The translations under genes were made by a program, and so were the position numbers. Below are positions 42,086-51,200 of a stretch of 64,000 bases of DNA, one piece after another. How positions within the stretch are numbered: the stretch's first letter is position 1; each line of letters opens with the position of its first letter. The DNA lies in contig BQFW01000008.1 in the NCBI GenBank assembly GCA_020891255.1, positions 2,728,001 through 2,792,000 on the forward strand, in the 5' to 3' direction. The notes beneath the pieces are model-generated. The model made no database searches and was not told where the DNA came from. It saw only the letters and a program-made list of their open reading frames with translations. Source of the stretch: Entomortierella parvispora E1425 (taxonomy: Eukaryota; Fungi; Mortierellomycota).

Positions 42086-44508
42086 ATGTTGTCAAGCTGC
42101 CTACTGAGTATAGCTGCCCTAGCGACCGTCCTGTTTCCTGTAGCGAATCCACTTCCAGCATCTACCAGCAAGCGATTTCTTCTACCAGATGCAGCTCGAG
42201 CGGACGATATCGATGGCGTTAGTATCCTCATGAAGGGCCAGGCCGAAACACTTCCTATCATCAAAAACACTTTTTTGCTCCTTTCCAGACCTACTGATTA
42301 CTACGAAGGGATGGCAAACTGTCTGAAAATGGGCGAAGGTACGACTCTTTCACTTTTTACCTGCAAATTCGCCCATCGCAGCTAACCCATCCCAGTCGTG
42401 GTAATAACTGGACTTCCATCTTCTTTTCCCCTACTGCCCCCCTCTTGCCTGTTCAAAAAAATACAGGTGGATACGTCTTTGTGGCAGGAACAGCAGCCGC
42501 AAAAGATCTGGTCGATTTACTCAAATCCAACGCTCCCGCCAACGAGGAAGTCCAGGGAGTCGATCGATTCTGGGTATATAACGGTGAGAGCCAGTTCCAG
42601 TCTTTTGTTCCTTTCCCAAGGTTCAGTCCTCGATCTAATCCGTTTGTTCATTGATCTTGCACCTCAACAGCTTTCCCTGGTGTCTTTGGAAAATGCCTGG
42701 CTGTCAACAAGCAGACTGGGACGACGGAATCGCTCGCCTGCAGCACTCCATTGCCCACGGTCTGCTAAAACAGCGTGATGCGGCGTGTATATATCTTTCG
42801 GGACGATACACGTCAAATCATTGTGAACGCGTCCGTTGGCCAGATCCAAGGTTGGCGCGACCAAAACGCATTCCGATTTCTTGGGATCCCATACGCCGAG
42901 CCGCCCACAGGAGAGCGCCGTTTCGCAAAAGCGGTTCTGAAAGCACCTTTCACCAATGGCGTATGGGATGCTATCGACTACCGATACATCTGCCCTCAGA
43001 TGCCATTGCTGCCCGATCGACATGACATAAACAAGCTCCAGGAAACATTGCTTTCCGAGTTGGAAAACTTGGCCCCCGAAGACGAAGATTGTCTGTTCTT
43101 GAATGTCTATACACCAAGTCTCAAGGGTTCAGGGAAAAGTGGACTCCCCGTTATTGTATATGTCCATGGAGGGGGCTACTCCTCCTTCTCTGGGTCCACC
43201 GTTCTTTTTGAGCCTGGTCATATGATTGCTCGAGGTGGTGTGGTCGTGGTGACCTTGAATTACCGCTTGGGGTTCTTGGGCTGGTTTGAGAACCAAGACA
43301 CCTGGAACCGGACTGCAGTGCCTGGAAACCAAGCTGTCCACGACGTTGTCCTCGCATTGAAATGGGTCCAAAAGAACATTGCTGCCTTCGGAGGGGATCC
43401 TGGTCGCGTCACCGCCATGGGAGAAAGTGTGGGCGCCGTCACCGTCCGGGCTTTGCTGTCGGCTCCCAGCACTTGGAACTTGTACCAAAATGTGATTATG
43501 GAATCCGATCCCATTTCCCTCCCCTTTAAACCCGCTGCGATGGCCGCTCAGGAGACGACCTATTTCATGGAGGCGCTTGGATGTGCGCCCCAAGATATTA
43601 TCTGTGCGAGAGCCGTCCCTATCAAGGACCTTCTCAAAGCCCAGCTCGTTGCCTTTGACCGTGCCTTGGCTGACAACTACTGGGTCACCTTTGGTCTTTT
43701 ATACCGCCCAGTCATTGACGGTGACCTGATTGCTGCCAACTTTTCAGAATTGGCCAAGCAAGGTCGACACAACACACAGGCCAACATCCTTTGGGGCACC
43801 ATGCATGATGAAGCAGGACTATATGCAGTACCGTACTGGCATGACCTTGTCCCTGTCAGCAACGCTAGTGCTGCTCTCCTGGAGCTTTTTGAAAAAGAGC
43901 GCATCGCCACCGTTTTGAACTCTGGTTTCTTTCCCCTCAACCAGTCTCAGCCAGACAGTTTCCGTATTACAGCGACACGGTTCGCAACCGATTATTTCTG
44001 GCTCTGTCCTTTGCGGTATCTATCCCATCTGGTTTCGCAACACAAACGAACCTTTCACTACCGCTTCGATCGAGGGCGCGACATCCCTTTGGTCAATGAC
44101 CCCTTCTGTGGCTCCAAAACAAACAGGTGGTGCCACAGCTTAGATATACAGCCCAGTTTTGGATCTGGCGATGCTGTCCCGGGGTACTTCCAGGACGGGG
44201 ACGATGCCCGGTTTGCGCGCCAGGTCATTGATCGGCTCACGAGCTTTGCCAAGACAGGGGATCCGAACCCCCAGCCGGGGCAGGTTGGCTATGAGGCGTC
44301 GAATCCAGATGTGACGAGCGTTCTATGGATTGCTCATGAAGGAGGAAGTGGAGGAGATAGGTACAATCCAACTCTGGACTTGAATGTGGAGTCGGCGATG
44401 ACCTTTGATGCCGAGGCAGATGCGTGCGATTGGATGGAAAAGGACTTTTTGTTTGATTTCTTGTACCATGATCCCGCAAAGTACAAACCAACGAAACCCA
44501 TTGTGTAA
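42086..44508 (+). CDS. Secreted type-B carboxylesterase with Cys-rich N-domain; in-frame TAA at 42766-42768
   Basis: Signal-like MLSSCLLSIAALATVLFPVANP; FLGIPYAEPP, EDCLFLNVY, VHGGGY, GESVG nucleophile elbow, GTMHDEA, WCHSLDI; two introns before 42671. Confidence 0.85.
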
Positions 44509-45737
44509 TTTCCCTGTAGATAGGATCATGTTCAGTTTGATCTTTTTGCAAAGAGGTTTACATCATCATACACTGTTGGCCGGGTGCCCAACGATCTCTG
44601 GCTGGACTTGTAAAACTTTCCAAGGCTCTCTGCTGCAGCTGCACATCATTTTTTTTTTCTTTTGGGGGAAGACCGGGATTACACACTCGAATTTGAATGG
44701 CTAATTTTAATGCAACCCGCTTTCTGCTTCCTCGCGTCCTTTACGCGACTCTACCTGAACTGTTGCTACTGCTATCAGTAGTCTGCCTCGCTTCCCCTTC
44801 ATGCAGTTGGAGACATGCCCACCTAATGTGCAAGCGCACCTCCACTTACTGAAGAGGCACGCACGCACAGACCATGATTATTGTGTTGAGGCACGACGTT
44901 GTTTTTGACCTTGGGGTGCTGCTGGGCCATCCAATTGCCCACTGGGTCGCACAGGACGGAGAAATGAGAAGAGGAGCCTGGACTAACTTTTTTCAGAAAT
45001 TGCACCGGGGAAGCAGCAGCGAAAAAATAAAGTCGAGTCATTTTCCCAGATTCGACTTGTGCTTTTTTGGAGTGCTTTTTGGCCCTCTTCCTTGGGTAAT
45101 CAAAGGGGAGCCATGGAGGTACCCTACCATTCGTTTTTTTTACCAAGGATGGAGGTCCCACACCCCAGAAAAGCCCCGCTTTCCAGCTGTGGGAAATTCT
45201 ATTTTGGTTGGGATGTGAGACACACTTTTGTGGATCCACTTTTGTCACTTTTGTCCGCCCTTTTTGTCCCACGTACGCCATGGTTCGTCTTCCGCCGCAT
45301 CTACTTTATCTCGTACGTATTGGGCCATGGAGGGCTTTGGATCCCTTTTTCCTTGGAGCTTTTTGTTTCCCTCAAGGCCACACAATCGGCAAACAAGCAA
45401 CAAAGGGGGTGGTTGGTTCGTGGATGGTTCAATTGCTCAATTGCCCAACCGCAAAGATCATGCACGTTTGACCTCGTCGGTCATGCTGTCATTGGGGGGT
45501 ATGTATCTATCTCGTCGAGAGAGAAAAGAGGAAAGGGGTGGGGTTCCATTTCTCACAGAAAACACGCCATCGTCACCATTCTCTTCCCTTGGGCTCCCGT
45601 CTACTATAAATCACATCCTCCTATCGAGCTTTCCGCCCTTTTTTTTCTTTTTTCATCAATTGTTCCTCTCTCCTCTCCCGTTCCTTCACTCTTCCCCCTT
45701 TTCTATACTCCCTCACCCACAACATCACAAATCCAAC

Positions 45738-46148
45738 ATGAGCTTCCCCAGCGGCCCCTTCCAGATCAAGCTTCGTGACGAGGATGTCGTCCTCGATGTC
45801 AAGCAAGGCACGACCGAGCCCGGTGCCGAGGTCATTATCTGGCGCAGCCGTCGCCACGAGGACGACAACGACAACCAAAAGTGGGTCTATGAGGACGGTC
45901 AGATCAAGAACTTGAAGAGCGGTATGGCCCTCACCGCCACCAGCTTCAACCGCGGTGCCGGTTTCGCCCAGTACCCCAGCGAGGGCAACGAGAAGCAGAA
46001 CTACGACTACTACGATTTCACCATCAGTGCCCAGGAGGACGAGGATCTGGTCATTGGTGTTACTTCCAGGGAGGAGGGCTCCTCGGTCACCTTGGTGCGT
46101 CGCGACAATGATGATTTCAAGCAGATGTGGGAGCTTGTTCCTCTGTAA
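45738..46148 (+). CDS. Ricin-B (beta-trefoil, CBM13-like) lectin, 136 aa, no signal peptide
   Basis: VLDVKQG..PGAEVIIW, NQKWVYEDGQIKNLKSGMAL, KQMWEL (QxW motifs); strong C/G third-position bias. Confidence 0.85.
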   Translation: MSFPSGPFQIKLRDEDVVLDVKQGTTEPGAEVIIWRSRRHEDDNDNQKWVYEDGQIKNLKSGMALTATSFNRGAGFAQYPSEGNEKQNYDYYDFTISAQEDEDLVIGVTSREEGSSVTLVRRDNDDFKQMWELVPL

Positions 46149-46902
46149 ATAAGGGGTTTTGACAGATCCACCCCGCCATAACCATCCAGCTTTCAGCGAC
46201 TCGACCCGACTTGACTCAATACCAAAACCCATCCATCCCCTCCCCAAAAAAAATGCACATAACTCCCTTGAAACTTGCTCCTCTGGCTGTCCACCCATAC
46301 CTTTTTTTTTCATTCGTGGCAGCCAACGAGCCTGTTTGTACCATTTGAGAAATAAAAAGGCGATCTGAAGCTGTTACCCAAAAAATGGAACACTACCGAA
46401 AGAACGAGAAAGATGAGGAACTCATGAGCGCGTGTGAACTAGAACAGATAAAAAGTTGTCAGCATGTGAGTGCAAGCGGAAAAAAGATCACCACTTTCTT
46501 GGTCTTTGTCGAAACAAAGGTCGTGGGAGCAAACCATTCTCACAAGTGGCTGTTGACGCCCAGCCTTCTTTCTCGGGTCAAGGAAAGGGGAACAGGGCGC
46601 GTGCGTGCGGGCGGGCGTGCGTAGGACAACGCCATTCAAAAAATCGTGACTGCTAGAAGAGCTTGGGCTTTCTCTTAACTTTTTTTTTTTTTTTTTTTTT
46701 TTTTTCATGCCAACGACACGTCCGTCCACGGGCACGCCATTGGTGCCCTCTCTTTTCCTTCCACAAAGCGCTTCAGGGATGCATGAACCCTGAAGAACAG
46801 TAGCTTTGCCTGCCTCCTTGAATCAATCGCGTTCTTAATTCAAAAATTAACTTTGTATCCTCTGCCAGACTGCAGTAGCACTCTTTCATTGCACTTGTCC
46901 TG

Positions 46903-47480
46903 TCCAACGATCTTTGCAACCACCCCGGCGCCAACGGTGATGTCGCCATCACGAACAGCAAAACCGCGAATCCACCTCCATGTAAATAAGATTGTCCAAG
47001 TCGCCATCGAAACCGTCTGGAAGCTGGATCGCGCCTCTCAATTCGATTGTACCAAAAGTAGAAACGTGGTCTATAGTTTGTCGAGAAGGACGTGGAACGT
47101 CCACCTTCCTCTGTCCCCAAGAGATACATCTCCGAAGTGAATGTCGAGTACGTCTTCACGGATCCCAGTGTCGCCAAGACTTGGCGTCAGACAACGTCCT
47201 CCGACTTGACGCCCGTTCAATACAACTCTCAGATAACCGCCCGCTCCACGGTGCACCGCCGACTGTTCCAAATGTGTGGATGTTGAAGCAGACCGAGTTC
47301 TGGGTGGATATGAATCAAGCTACCTCCACAGCCGATACAGACGATACCATGGTTTACAGTGCCGACGACAAGCTCCCCATGACCAGGCATGACAACGATG
47401 GACCTTCAGGAAAGACTTGCACGGGTACTTCATTTCTCTGTGTCTCTGGACCCATGGACAGATTTGGCAAATAAATACGT
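46903..47480 (-). pseudogene. tuf: Decayed EF-Tu (tuf) fragment, domains 2-3
   Basis: Across frames: [100 protein letters not shown]. These are colinear with EF-Tu [54 protein letters not shown]. Confidence 0.8.
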
Positions 47481-50400
47481 GCTAACTCCACTCGTCTATC
47501 TATGTTTAGGACAGGAAGACCTGAAACTTGCACCCCATGTAGCCACGCAGTGATACTCACTGAACGTAACATGAGTAAAGAAGACTGCAGGTGAATTTAC
47601 GAGGACGTTTTGCCTGAGCTGATCTTTGCATCGATATACGCGTTTTTTTTTGTTTTTTTTTTGGACGGTACACCCTAGACTCATCATGATTCATGATGAG
47701 TTTTCGTTTCGTTTCTCTTCAAGGGATCTATAAGGACCCCCATCGTACCTTTATTGACATGCACACAGGAGAGATGAAGGATGCCGAAGGAAAAAGGATA
47801 GTAGCCACAAAAAAAGTGCTCAATGCAAAAAAGCAAGGACAGGGAAAGACAGGGAAACGAGAAAGGGGAGAGACATACGACATGGTATGACTGAAGACAG
47901 GAAAGGAGAGGGAAGAGTTGCGAGACAACAGGGGACAGAAAGAGAAAGAGAAAAAGAATGGTTGCCGAGAGAAAATTGATCCTAGACAAAGTTCCAGTGA
48001 GTAAGAACTCAAGTTCTTGGTTCTTCGCAGCAAATTCAAAGGCGTGCTGAGTTTTTTTTTCTCATCAACTCTGTTTGCTGGAAGAAAAAGGACGTGGTCG
48101 CAGGCCTACTTCACATACCTACTATGAAGAATCAGAGTACGTCTTTGGAGATACCATCAGGGTTGCCATTGGTTGTAGAGTCGTTGGAAGTGGAGTTAGC
48201 AAGAACAAGGAAGGTGAAGCGATGGAAACATCAAGGCGATGGATGTATGGCGCGTCGTGCCCGTTTGGTGGCGACAGACTCAATCTGCACACGTGACTCA
48301 GTCATGCATACGCGCGTGTTGCGAGAGATCTAGCCTCTGCGGTGCAAGACCATTTCTCAGATCCTTCCAAAGTAAACCCGACTCTAGATGACACCAAACT
48401 AAACAGCAGCGGACCGTAACATGATTCGCTGGCCCCCTGCCCATGACCGTCTCTTGAAGATTCTTGGTAATTGTCATGCGCCACTGATAGAAAATACCCG
48501 TGTTAACACATGAACTTCTTTGAGTCAGGGCTCGGCTCGACTCGATGAGTCGACGCCATTAGATGATAATATACAGTCAATTCAAAAGTCTAAAAAAGAA
48601 GAAGGGCAATGCATACGTTCAATGTTGGTATTGGATGGCAAATATCCACAATCCTCTCGCACGTACATTTTGTAGCCTCAGAAAGTCAAGATAAACTGTC
48701 ACTCTTGTAATCAGATCAAACGCCTGTCCATAGAATGCGCGCGTGTTCTTGTGAGCAGCATTTTTTCTCCCTGGTCGCATCGATCGCGTTTCGACCTTTC
48801 CTCATTCACCCGTCGTCTCATAGACTAAACCCTTCCCCCCTGATCCTATATATCCTACAAACGGACAAACGGCGAAAACCGAGCTGACCAAAGAAAAGAG
48901 ATGCAGGTGGAGGCTAGTGCGCCATGTCAGAGGCGTCCCTGTAATCTGTGATGACTTTTTGTAAAGAGAAAAAAAAAAAAAAAAAGGCCTGGGAAAGTAG
49001 ACCCTGGAGGATTGGACATGTGCCCAGTGAATGTACAATGATTTCGCAACGTGTGCTCTTGATTCTTGGAGAGACGTCAAGATAATAACAGCTCTTTTCG
49101 TCAGCTGGAATGTGCTTTAGGACACAAAGAGGGGGTGAGGAGATCTCCGAGTCCGACTTTGGAAACGGGAAACGAAAAACAGTGTGGCACAGGCTCTATT
49201 GAAGACTCGGAAAGGTTAGAAAAGGCCTTCTGTTGCGCGCATAAGATCAAGATACAACTCCCCTCCTCTCCTTTCGACACCATGTGCCGAATCTGACTGG
49301 ACAGCAAAGGCGCGCAAAAAAACTGGTTTGATCCGTTTTTTCAAAGCCAGCCTCCGGGGAGAGCAAGGCGAGGTAGAATGCGGGGGGATCATCAGACAGG
49401 TTGAATGGAGGTACAGTAGTCTGTAACAAACTACAGTAGGTACAGTAAAACGTCAAGATGTGAATGGACTATGGGCAAGAAAAGGTCGCCCTTGGGAGCC
49501 CACACCTTCAGATTTCCACAACCAACAAAATTGCAGATCCTCGAGCACAGGCACAGGGCATGCTTAAACGACTGGACCAGGACGTTCGGAGAAAATGGGC
49601 GAAATCGACACCGCGCAGGTTCACCATGCCAGACGGACCAACGGAGAGCCAATAGATTTTCGTCTGTTTGCTCTCGGGTTGTCGTTACACAGCCTCAACA
49701 CAATCGAGGGTGTGATCTGTCTGTCTTTGGGTTGCATGGAGTCCAAAGCAATCCTTTGGTTTCTCCCTTCTCTCTCATTGTAGGCTTTAGAAAGGTGACC
49801 CCTTGATATATTTAATCAATGGTCAATCCCAATCCGACAAAATTGAATGGGATCGGCCAACATGAGCTTTGGAAATAGCATGCACCCCCTGCTCCCACAG
49901 GCAGGGAAAAGGCCAACTCTCCTTTCTCTCTGTGCCGCCCGCCCAACCGCTCTTTTTGTTTCGGTTGTCAATCATCACCAAGATCGATCGTACTTTTTTT
50001 TTCTTTGATCGATTGAAGAAAGATACTACTGTGGTTGTCTCACAGCCACTTGTTCACGTTGTTGGCGTCGGGGTCCAGGCGTAGTAGGGGGACATCAATG
50101 GCGCCATGGATGCATTGCAATTAACAGAATAAGCTCGGCTCAAGAAAGAGACATATGAGATGGAGATAGAGACCATATGGAAACGAGAAGAGCGATGTTG
50201 GTGAGTATGAAATATGAATAGGCGTGATGCTGATGAAGCTAATGATGCTGGCCGAGGCGCGAGGAGGGAGCAAGCCAGCCAGCCAGCCAGCCAAAAAAAA
50301 AAAATCTAGAGCTCTCGACTTTCACTACCGTTGCCGCCAATCACATCCCGTGCAGTGCGACCGTGACAGATTCTATGGTCCTACGTAGCCGCGCGTCTTT

Positions 50401-51200
50401 TGTTTATTTGCAGGAAGATCCTCTTCCAAGAGCACTTTCTTCGATGCATGTTCACCCGCACTCCTTGGCTCTTACCCTTCCTGCCCCCCTGTCCCATTCA
50501 ATCCCAATTCAAATTCAATTGACCACAAATTGGCCTGCCCTCGTCCGTCGACACTGGATATCTGCTGCCAGCCTGTCGTTGACTGGCTGGCTGATCGAGG
50601 CTGCGATCTGGTTGGCTGACGAACGCATCCTTCAGGAACGTGGATGGGGGTTGGCCCCCCTTGTCACCACTGTTCGCCTTTCCTTTCGCGTCCACCGGGA
50701 TGGAAATGGACCACAACAGTTGCAATCAACAACCAGACAAAGGAGGAGGGGGGGGGGTGACCATGCCCTTTTTATTCCCAACACTCATGAGAGGCTGTGG
50801 GCCACCCTTTTTCCACCTTCCCTTCCTCCCTTTGATCGACTTTTCTTCACCCTCACGCACTTTTTCTCTTCAATAGACACCTTTGCACTGAGACAACCCA
50901 CGCCAACAAACAAACACTGTCCAAGATACACTCTGCACCTTTGTCTCTTCTTCATCAAGCAAATTATCTCCCGCATCATCATCCTTATCTTCATCAGCAC
51001 CCTTGCGCACAACCCTGCACGTTCAGTTGCCCTGTCGTTAATATCCCATCCTTCCCTCCTTACACATCCACCACTCAACCTCTCTTTCTTTAATTCACCG
51101 CTGTCTTTTTTATTTGTTCACATCACTCCTCCCTCTCCCCTCAGTTACTCCTCGTCCCCTGACTCCCCCTTCCCCTCTGTGCTCGTCCACTCCACCCCTC

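Follow-up and report, generated by a model that had tools for sequence, protein, structure and literature searches.

The question raised by this locus was whether a short, interrupted stretch of similarity to elongation factor Tu (EF-Tu) on contig BQFW01000008.1 (3.3 Mb; assembly GCA_020891255.1) of the fungus Entomortierella parvispora E1425 is what remains of a bacterial gene, as had been proposed from the letters alone, or whether it should be explained by the fungus's own nuclear gene for mitochondrial EF-Tu (tufM, product TufM), by another eukaryotic source or by the assembly itself. All positions given here are those of the window, i.e. the whole 64-kb stretch of that contig that was analysed. 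The explanation that we favour, and consider probable rather than certain, is that a tuf (EF-Tu) gene of bacterial type has left a fossil without function in fungal nuclear DNA.

The homology to EF-Tu was far above chance. A single 46-residue piece of the relic matched the Pfam family GTP_EFTU_D3 (PF03143) with E=3.6e-8 (34.1 bits as compared with a cut-off of 27), and the best PDB matches of a relic piece were likewise EF-Tu (E=2.8e-9). When EF-Tu fragments were compared with the relic DNA using tblastn, E-values of 1e-15 to 1e-17 were obtained, including a single HSP of 111–116 residues (E=6e-15 to 2e-17) that led from the GRGTVVTGR motif of domain 2 into domain 3. The separate pieces of domain 2 gave no match to its own Pfam family (PF03144), whereas the profile alignment was collinear through this domain. 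In all these searches the relic pieces were used apart, with exons and relic pieces joined only for alignments and trees. At the DNA level, blastn found no match to the relic in E. coli genomes, a protein search with the 134-residue relic open reading frame (ORF) gave no candidate sharing three 5-mers, the pieces being short and decayed, and the relic ORF was not found as a called gene anywhere.

The anatomy of the relic was determined by frameshift-aware DNA-to-profile alignment, using a profile built from ~200 EF-Tu sequences, which returned a single path that was collinear with EF-Tu, without introns and non-coding. Five frameshifts were placed along this path (near 47404, 47300, 47211, 47054 and 46960) together with one in-frame stop, at 47189–47187 within the best-kept piece, while in the C-terminal piece the original stop was gone and the frame continued for 19 codons. 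The relic, on the minus strand, agreed with the original prediction of an intronless, frameshifted and stop-containing relic of EF-Tu domains 2 and 3 at this place, and both motifs that had been quoted for it were also found, NYRPRFYF in the frame of the ORF at 46773–47177 and a 12-letter C-terminal motif in that of the ORF at 46840–47007. Regarding the extent, which had been given as 46903–47480, the place was right and the outer limit of 47480 lay ~30 nt too far out, as the homology starts at 47449. With no intact reading frame present, the locus must be regarded as a gene fragment and not a gene. No trace of the GTPase domain (PF00009) was seen, with four EF-Tu queries at E-values up to 5 giving no G-domain HSP in 46000–49500, i.e. 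within 2 kb upstream of the relic.

Table 1. Features of the EF-Tu relic and of the neighbouring homopolymer, in window coordinates unless otherwise stated
Feature	Position	Strand	Evidence or remark
Whole EF-Tu relic	46906..47449	(-)	Frameshift-aware profile alignment, score 205; tblastn HSPs; Pfam D3
Span of the relic in the protein: end of domain 1 linker, domain 2 and domain 3	EF-Tu positions 201-393/394		
Remnant of the domain 1-domain 2 linker (PTPERDLDKPF.. region)	47405..47449	(-)	Homology begins at this remnant
Domain 2 relic in two frames (..PGHGELVVGTVNHGIV.. then ..AGGYLRVVLNG)	47212..47402	(-)	Frameshift near 47300
End of domain 2 and start of domain 3, best-kept piece	47055..47210	(-)	Pfam GTP_EFTU_D3; PDB EF-Tu
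Middle of domain 3, strongly decayed, ~11 codons deleted	46961..47053	(-)	Frameshifts at the borders near 47054 and 46960
C-terminal motif	46906..46959	(-)	Pfam D3 positions 87-105, E=0.0038; comparison with fungal TufM
A26 homopolymer (T26 on the plus strand)	46680..46705	(-)	200 nt 3' of the relic

With regard to its setting, the relic is flanked by two annotated genes, one for a RicinB lectin and the other, ~5 kb away, for a cyclin, the lectin, esterase and cyclin genes all being located on the same 3.3-Mb contig, and no gene has been called on the relic itself in GCA_020891255.1. Illumina contigs of the source sample covered 44500–46668 and 46715–48954 with zero differences and at a depth of 74–77x, equal for relic and flanks; the only runs containing the relic stretch were those of the source sample, which are not independent of the assembly. 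The 2.2-kb short-read contig bearing the relic (46715–48954) also bears 1.5 kb of non-bacterial flank. The shared 3.3-Mb contig and the equal depth show the relic to be physically linked to vertically inherited host genes, at the copy number of the host. These contig and depth data are consistent with a relic that is single-copy, silent and nuclear. The short-read contigs break at 46669–46714 (T26) and at 48955–48997 (A17), where continuity is given solely by the Nanopore assembly. It was also seen that 46150–51100, i.e. ~5 kb, has no annotated gene, as compared with a genome average of one gene per 3.3 kb; this interval yielded 10 ORFs without a Pfam match, no tRNAs and no sign of other decayed genes. 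Relics of the bacterial neighbours fusA, rpsJ, secE and nusG were not found anywhere in the 64-kb window, nor were tRNA genes. A direct repeat of a 10-mer and a 9-mer had been considered as the mark of a second copy in tandem or of a target-site duplication, and was rejected when local alignment proved no better than for shuffles.

For comparison we assembled a bacterial set of 80 labelled tuf loci from a bacterial genome scan, Mycoavidus not being among the 80, and a metagenome set of 120 loci retrieved with the degenerate pattern Y-R-P-Q-x-[FY]-x-R-T-A-D, which included Saccharomyces-like, Pezizomycotina-like and Basidiomycota-like tufM as well as one locus, L100, that is an early-branching member of the fungal clade. 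A protein search seeded with the long exon of L100, for which the best 120 matches were listed, gave labelled TufM from Mucorales, Umbelopsis, Bifiguratus, Calcarisporiella, Glomeromycotina, Zoopagomycota, chytrids, Blastocladiomycota and cnidarians. Among these best 120 matches every other early-diverging fungal lineage was present and none was from Mortierellaceae. The host TufM was thus represented by other fungi only, and the assignment of the relic as not being of host type rests on phylogenetic bracketing. As for the missing Mortierellaceae, for which annotated proteomes exist, their TufM may be more divergent or may have ranked beyond the matches listed.

Some observations on the sequences themselves should be mentioned here. 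A search seeded with the eukaryote-type metagenome fragment P0151 retrieved four kindred fragments, followed by bacteria. In a library of 50%-identity clusters the top representatives (P0001–P0005) were EF-Tu with duplicated domain-3 segments, probably tufA/tufB assembly chimeras, which made the score ranking misleading; the search of this library gave for the most part chimeric or fragmentary, unlabelled EF-Tu representatives. In many unrelated eukaryotic tufM from metagenomes (P0008, P0017, P0040, P0070, P0115, P0150, P0151, L146 and L182), the glycine codon directly following RTAD[VI]TG was interrupted by an intron, into which the called ORFs run at that point, and which looks like an old conserved position; the relic is collinear across the site. 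A loss of RTADVT from the relic at this intron site had been considered and was dropped, as the profile alignment requires no such deletion.

Comparing the relic with these sets, we found that it carries residues of bacterial rather than fungal type, with the host homologue represented by other fungi. Over 177 aligned columns its identity was 42–46% to labelled bacterial EF-Tu and 31–40% to ~110 fungal, animal or unlabelled kindred TufM, with Dikarya-like sequences at 26–30%. We also counted diagnostic columns, defined as those in which each of two groups is conserved and the two have different residues. In 24 such columns between Proteobacteria and Mucoromycotina plus Glomeromycotina, the relic had the bacterial residue in 13, the fungal in 1 and neither in 10; the corresponding counts were 4 bacterial to 0 fungal against all labelled fungi, 5 to 0 for the bacterial state against the unlabelled kindred groups, and 4 for Proteobacteria to 1 for the other side against plant or algal types. 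All of the fungal and cnidarian TufM retrieved had RPQ[MLIV][FY].RT[TA]D and RFT.REGGKT[VI]GTG, the sampling comprising Mucorales, Umbelopsis, Glomeromycotina, Zoopagomycota, chytrids, Blastocladiomycota and Dikarya-like sequences in addition to cnidarians, in agreement with the fungal motifs RPQ(M/L)F and TVGTG that had been given at the outset. Where fungal TufM has RPQ[MLIV][FY] the relic reads RPRFYF, and its C-terminal motif has the bacterial and plant residues A, A and A as opposed to T, T and T in fungal and animal TufM. Taken on their own, the two motifs cannot serve as the bacterial markers they had been thought to be, since plant and algal mitochondrial EF-Tu also has YRPQFY and TVGAGVV. 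The broader claim, of a relic of bacterial and not of fungal mitochondrial type, held up in the column counts as well as in the tree, where positions within the fungus–animal clade were disfavoured.

In a quick tree the relic formed a branch of 3.9 changes per column on the bacterial side of a split, supported at 99%, that sets off the fungus–animal clade. Its placement was determined on a reference tree of 53 taxa by grafting it in turn onto all 103 branches under LG+F+G4. The best positions were in Proteobacteria, next to Thiobacillus or on the stems of the beta or gamma groups, with Alphaproteobacteria and deeper bacterial branches also accepted. Positions nested in the fungus–animal clade cost 12.9–19.9 lnL and were all rejected (AU p<0.05); under LG+C20+F+G4 they cost 8.3–9.2 lnL, a marginal rejection (p 0.04–0.05) with the ranking unchanged. 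The stem of the fungus–animal clade was accepted (delta lnL 1.9–3.7, with 3.7 under LG+F+G4), and a constraint that only required the relic to share one side of a branch with this clade, and so allows the sister position, was not rejected (p-AU 0.78). Plant-like or algal and other eukaryote branches were not rejected either (delta lnL 0.55–2.7, with 2.5 for the plant-like branches under LG+F+G4 and 0.55 under C20). As the sampled fungi and animals bracket Mortierellomycotina, the relic is unlikely to descend from an ordinary, vertically inherited TufM of the host.

Judging from these sequence comparisons, a bacterium is the most likely donor, with Proteobacteria at large fitting best. The proposal of endosymbiont or bacterial DNA therefore stood with regard to its bacterial type and not with regard to a Burkholderiaceae donor, as the position beside Burkholderia and Caballeronia was mildly rejected (p 0.018 under LG and 0.044 under C20), with Mycoavidus EF-Tu outside the sample. 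Endosymbiont sequences evolve fast, and because of this, and of the sampling, Mycoavidus may still be the donor in spite of the mild rejection. The natural endobacterium of E. parvispora E1425 is Mycoavidus sp. B2-EB (PMC8759367). We would only tentatively suggest that the fragment is a fossil, akin to the nuclear Wolbachia transfers (nuwts) considered below, that goes back to an ancient endobacterium related to Burkholderia and belonging to the Mycoavidus/Glomeribacter lineage; this would imply that, tens of millions of years ago, DNA of the endosymbiont leaked into a nucleus of Mortierellaceae.

Several other explanations had to be weighed against a bacterial origin. One is a decayed copy of the host's nuclear tufM, either a 5'-truncated retrocopy with an A26 poly(A) tail or an old DNA duplicate. 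The relic indeed resembles processed pseudogenes of nuclear genes for mitochondrial proteins in being intronless, 5'-truncated and followed by an A-rich tract, and the T26 tract, correctly described in the original prediction, reads as A26 on the same strand as the relic and lies 200 nt 3' of the coding end, a mildly suggestive position, as the chance of such a tract within 300 nt in this orientation is ~0.7–2%. The trees moreover accept the relic as a sister of the whole fungus–animal clade, the host's own TufM is absent from the comparison set, and the VKTY of the relic resembles V[RK]PY and KTY of some eukaryotic mitochondrial EF-Tu. Against this, the relic differs from such pseudogenes in its bacterial-type residues: it lacks states common to all retrieved fungal TufM, both in the columns (13:1) and in the C-terminal motif (A/A/A versus T/T/T), and nesting it among fungi costs 8–19 lnL when tested with 18–42 labelled or kindred fungal TufM. 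Furthermore, no convincing direct repeat flanks the relic as a target-site duplication, and the tract is a pure A26 where ~7 of 26 positions would be expected to have changed at ~0.3 substitutions per site. Since a pure 26-mer is too clean for the age of the relic, we judge the tract to be probably an unrelated homopolymer maintained by slippage; A or T tracts of at least 20 nt occur 3 times in the 64-kb window. On balance we find a copy of host tufM unlikely.

We find it quite improbable that the fungus took up, as cDNA or DNA, a mitochondrial EF-Tu gene of a non-fungal eukaryote (plant, algal or protist type) and that the relic stems from it. The placements did accept plant-like and other eukaryote branches as given above, and KTY and GVVAK are found in mitochondrial EF-Tu of plants and algae (P0133, P0151 and L146), yet the genes of this type are rich in introns (~9 exons in L104 and ~8 in L146), many with one directly after RTAD[VI]TG, and an RNA intermediate would be needed because the relic is collinear across those sites. 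At the diagnostic columns the relic also agreed with Proteobacteria four times and with these eukaryotes once, and Mortierellomycota have received genes far more commonly from bacteria (PMC11291939). Finally, an assembly artefact or bacterial contamination, with the relic lying outside the fungal chromosome, seems to us extremely improbable. The sole public run with the relic stretch is probably the assembly's own source and the T26 and A17 homopolymers are not spanned by any short-read contig, but in a live contaminant the gene would be intact and not show five frameshifts with a loss of 50% of the residues, the depth of the relic equals that of its flanks, and one contig holds it together with non-bacterial sequence. 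The genome was also sequenced from a ciprofloxacin-cured line in which loss of the endobacterium had been checked by PCR, with the chromosome-scale contig resulting from an Illumina-polished assembly of 409x Nanopore data (PMC8759367).

Returning to the favoured reading of a bacterial-type tuf fossil, a ~0.55-kb fragment containing only the second half of the gene would have entered the nuclear DNA of the Entomortierella lineage between genes, most likely when a broken chromosome was repaired. Its coding capacity would never have been present at the new site or would soon have been lost, and neutral drift amounting to ~0.3 substitutions per site may afterwards have given rise to the five frameshifts, the stop and the deletions. 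The age is suggested by the universally invariant residues of EF-Tu, of which 52% are kept in the relic and 48% lost, and which thus point to an old relic with ~0.3 substitutions per nucleotide. A second run of the source sample, which looks like an RNA library, gave no contig on the relic, and because the relic has neither an open frame nor an annotation nor a transcript contig, it most likely has no function. Points that tell against a bacterial fossil are the very long branch of the relic, the accepted positions on the fungus–animal stem and among plant or algal types, the bracketing in place of the host TufM, the lack of bacterial neighbour genes in the window and the A26 tract downstream.

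As compared with bacterial EF-Tu (tufA/tufB; GTP_EFTU, GTP_EFTU_D2 and GTP_EFTU_D3), the relic has kept domains 2 and 3 with the C-terminal motif, but it differs in having no GTPase domain, no open frame and no operon neighbours, and in having lost about half of the invariant residues. Dead bacterial insertions are known from other eukaryotic nuclei, such as the Wolbachia-to-insect and Wolbachia-to-nematode transfers (nuwts) and other pseudogenes derived from lateral gene transfer. Like nuwts, the relic is a fragment of a bacterial housekeeping gene in a host chromosome, truncated, frameshifted, unannotated, apparently unexpressed and by all appearances decaying neutrally; unlike them, it is found in a fungal host as a single isolated 0.55-kb piece, should be much older and is more decayed than is typical, and its link to a resident Mycoavidus is only putative. 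Functional bacterial xenologs have been reported in Mortierellomycota, with Burkholderiales and Actinomycetia as the main donors (Ciach et al. 2024, PMC11291939). They concern the same host group and the same direction of transfer, and the relic would be in line with that reported bacterial gene flow, but those xenologs are intact genes, often with acquired introns and found in proteomes, whereas the relic is the fossil, no longer coding, of a gene of the informational class; pseudogenes are not mentioned in that study (PMC11291939).

Surveys of gene transfer in early-diverging fungi use predicted proteins and will thereby register only those transfers that yielded working genes, whereas the relic indicates that raw, unselected bacterial DNA may also enter these nuclei and persist there. 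Should more scraps of this kind be found and point to one donor group, they could form an unbiased record of bacterial partners and of the duration of the partnerships, and they would test whether DNA of endohyphal bacteria leaks into their hosts as that of Wolbachia does in insects. If the endosymbiont reading is true, presence or absence of the relic at the lectin–cyclin locus across Mortierellaceae could help to date the symbiosis. As a single fragment the relic is a modest curiosity, and its use for dating requires that the donor and the orthologous sites be established.

As a side observation, the RNA-like run contained a 679-nt contig with a depth of ~2058, at 45683–46361, which falls exactly on the gene for the 136-residue RicinB lectin (45738–46148). 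This small lectin hence seems to be very highly expressed, with a transcript that would stop ~210 nt past the stop codon.
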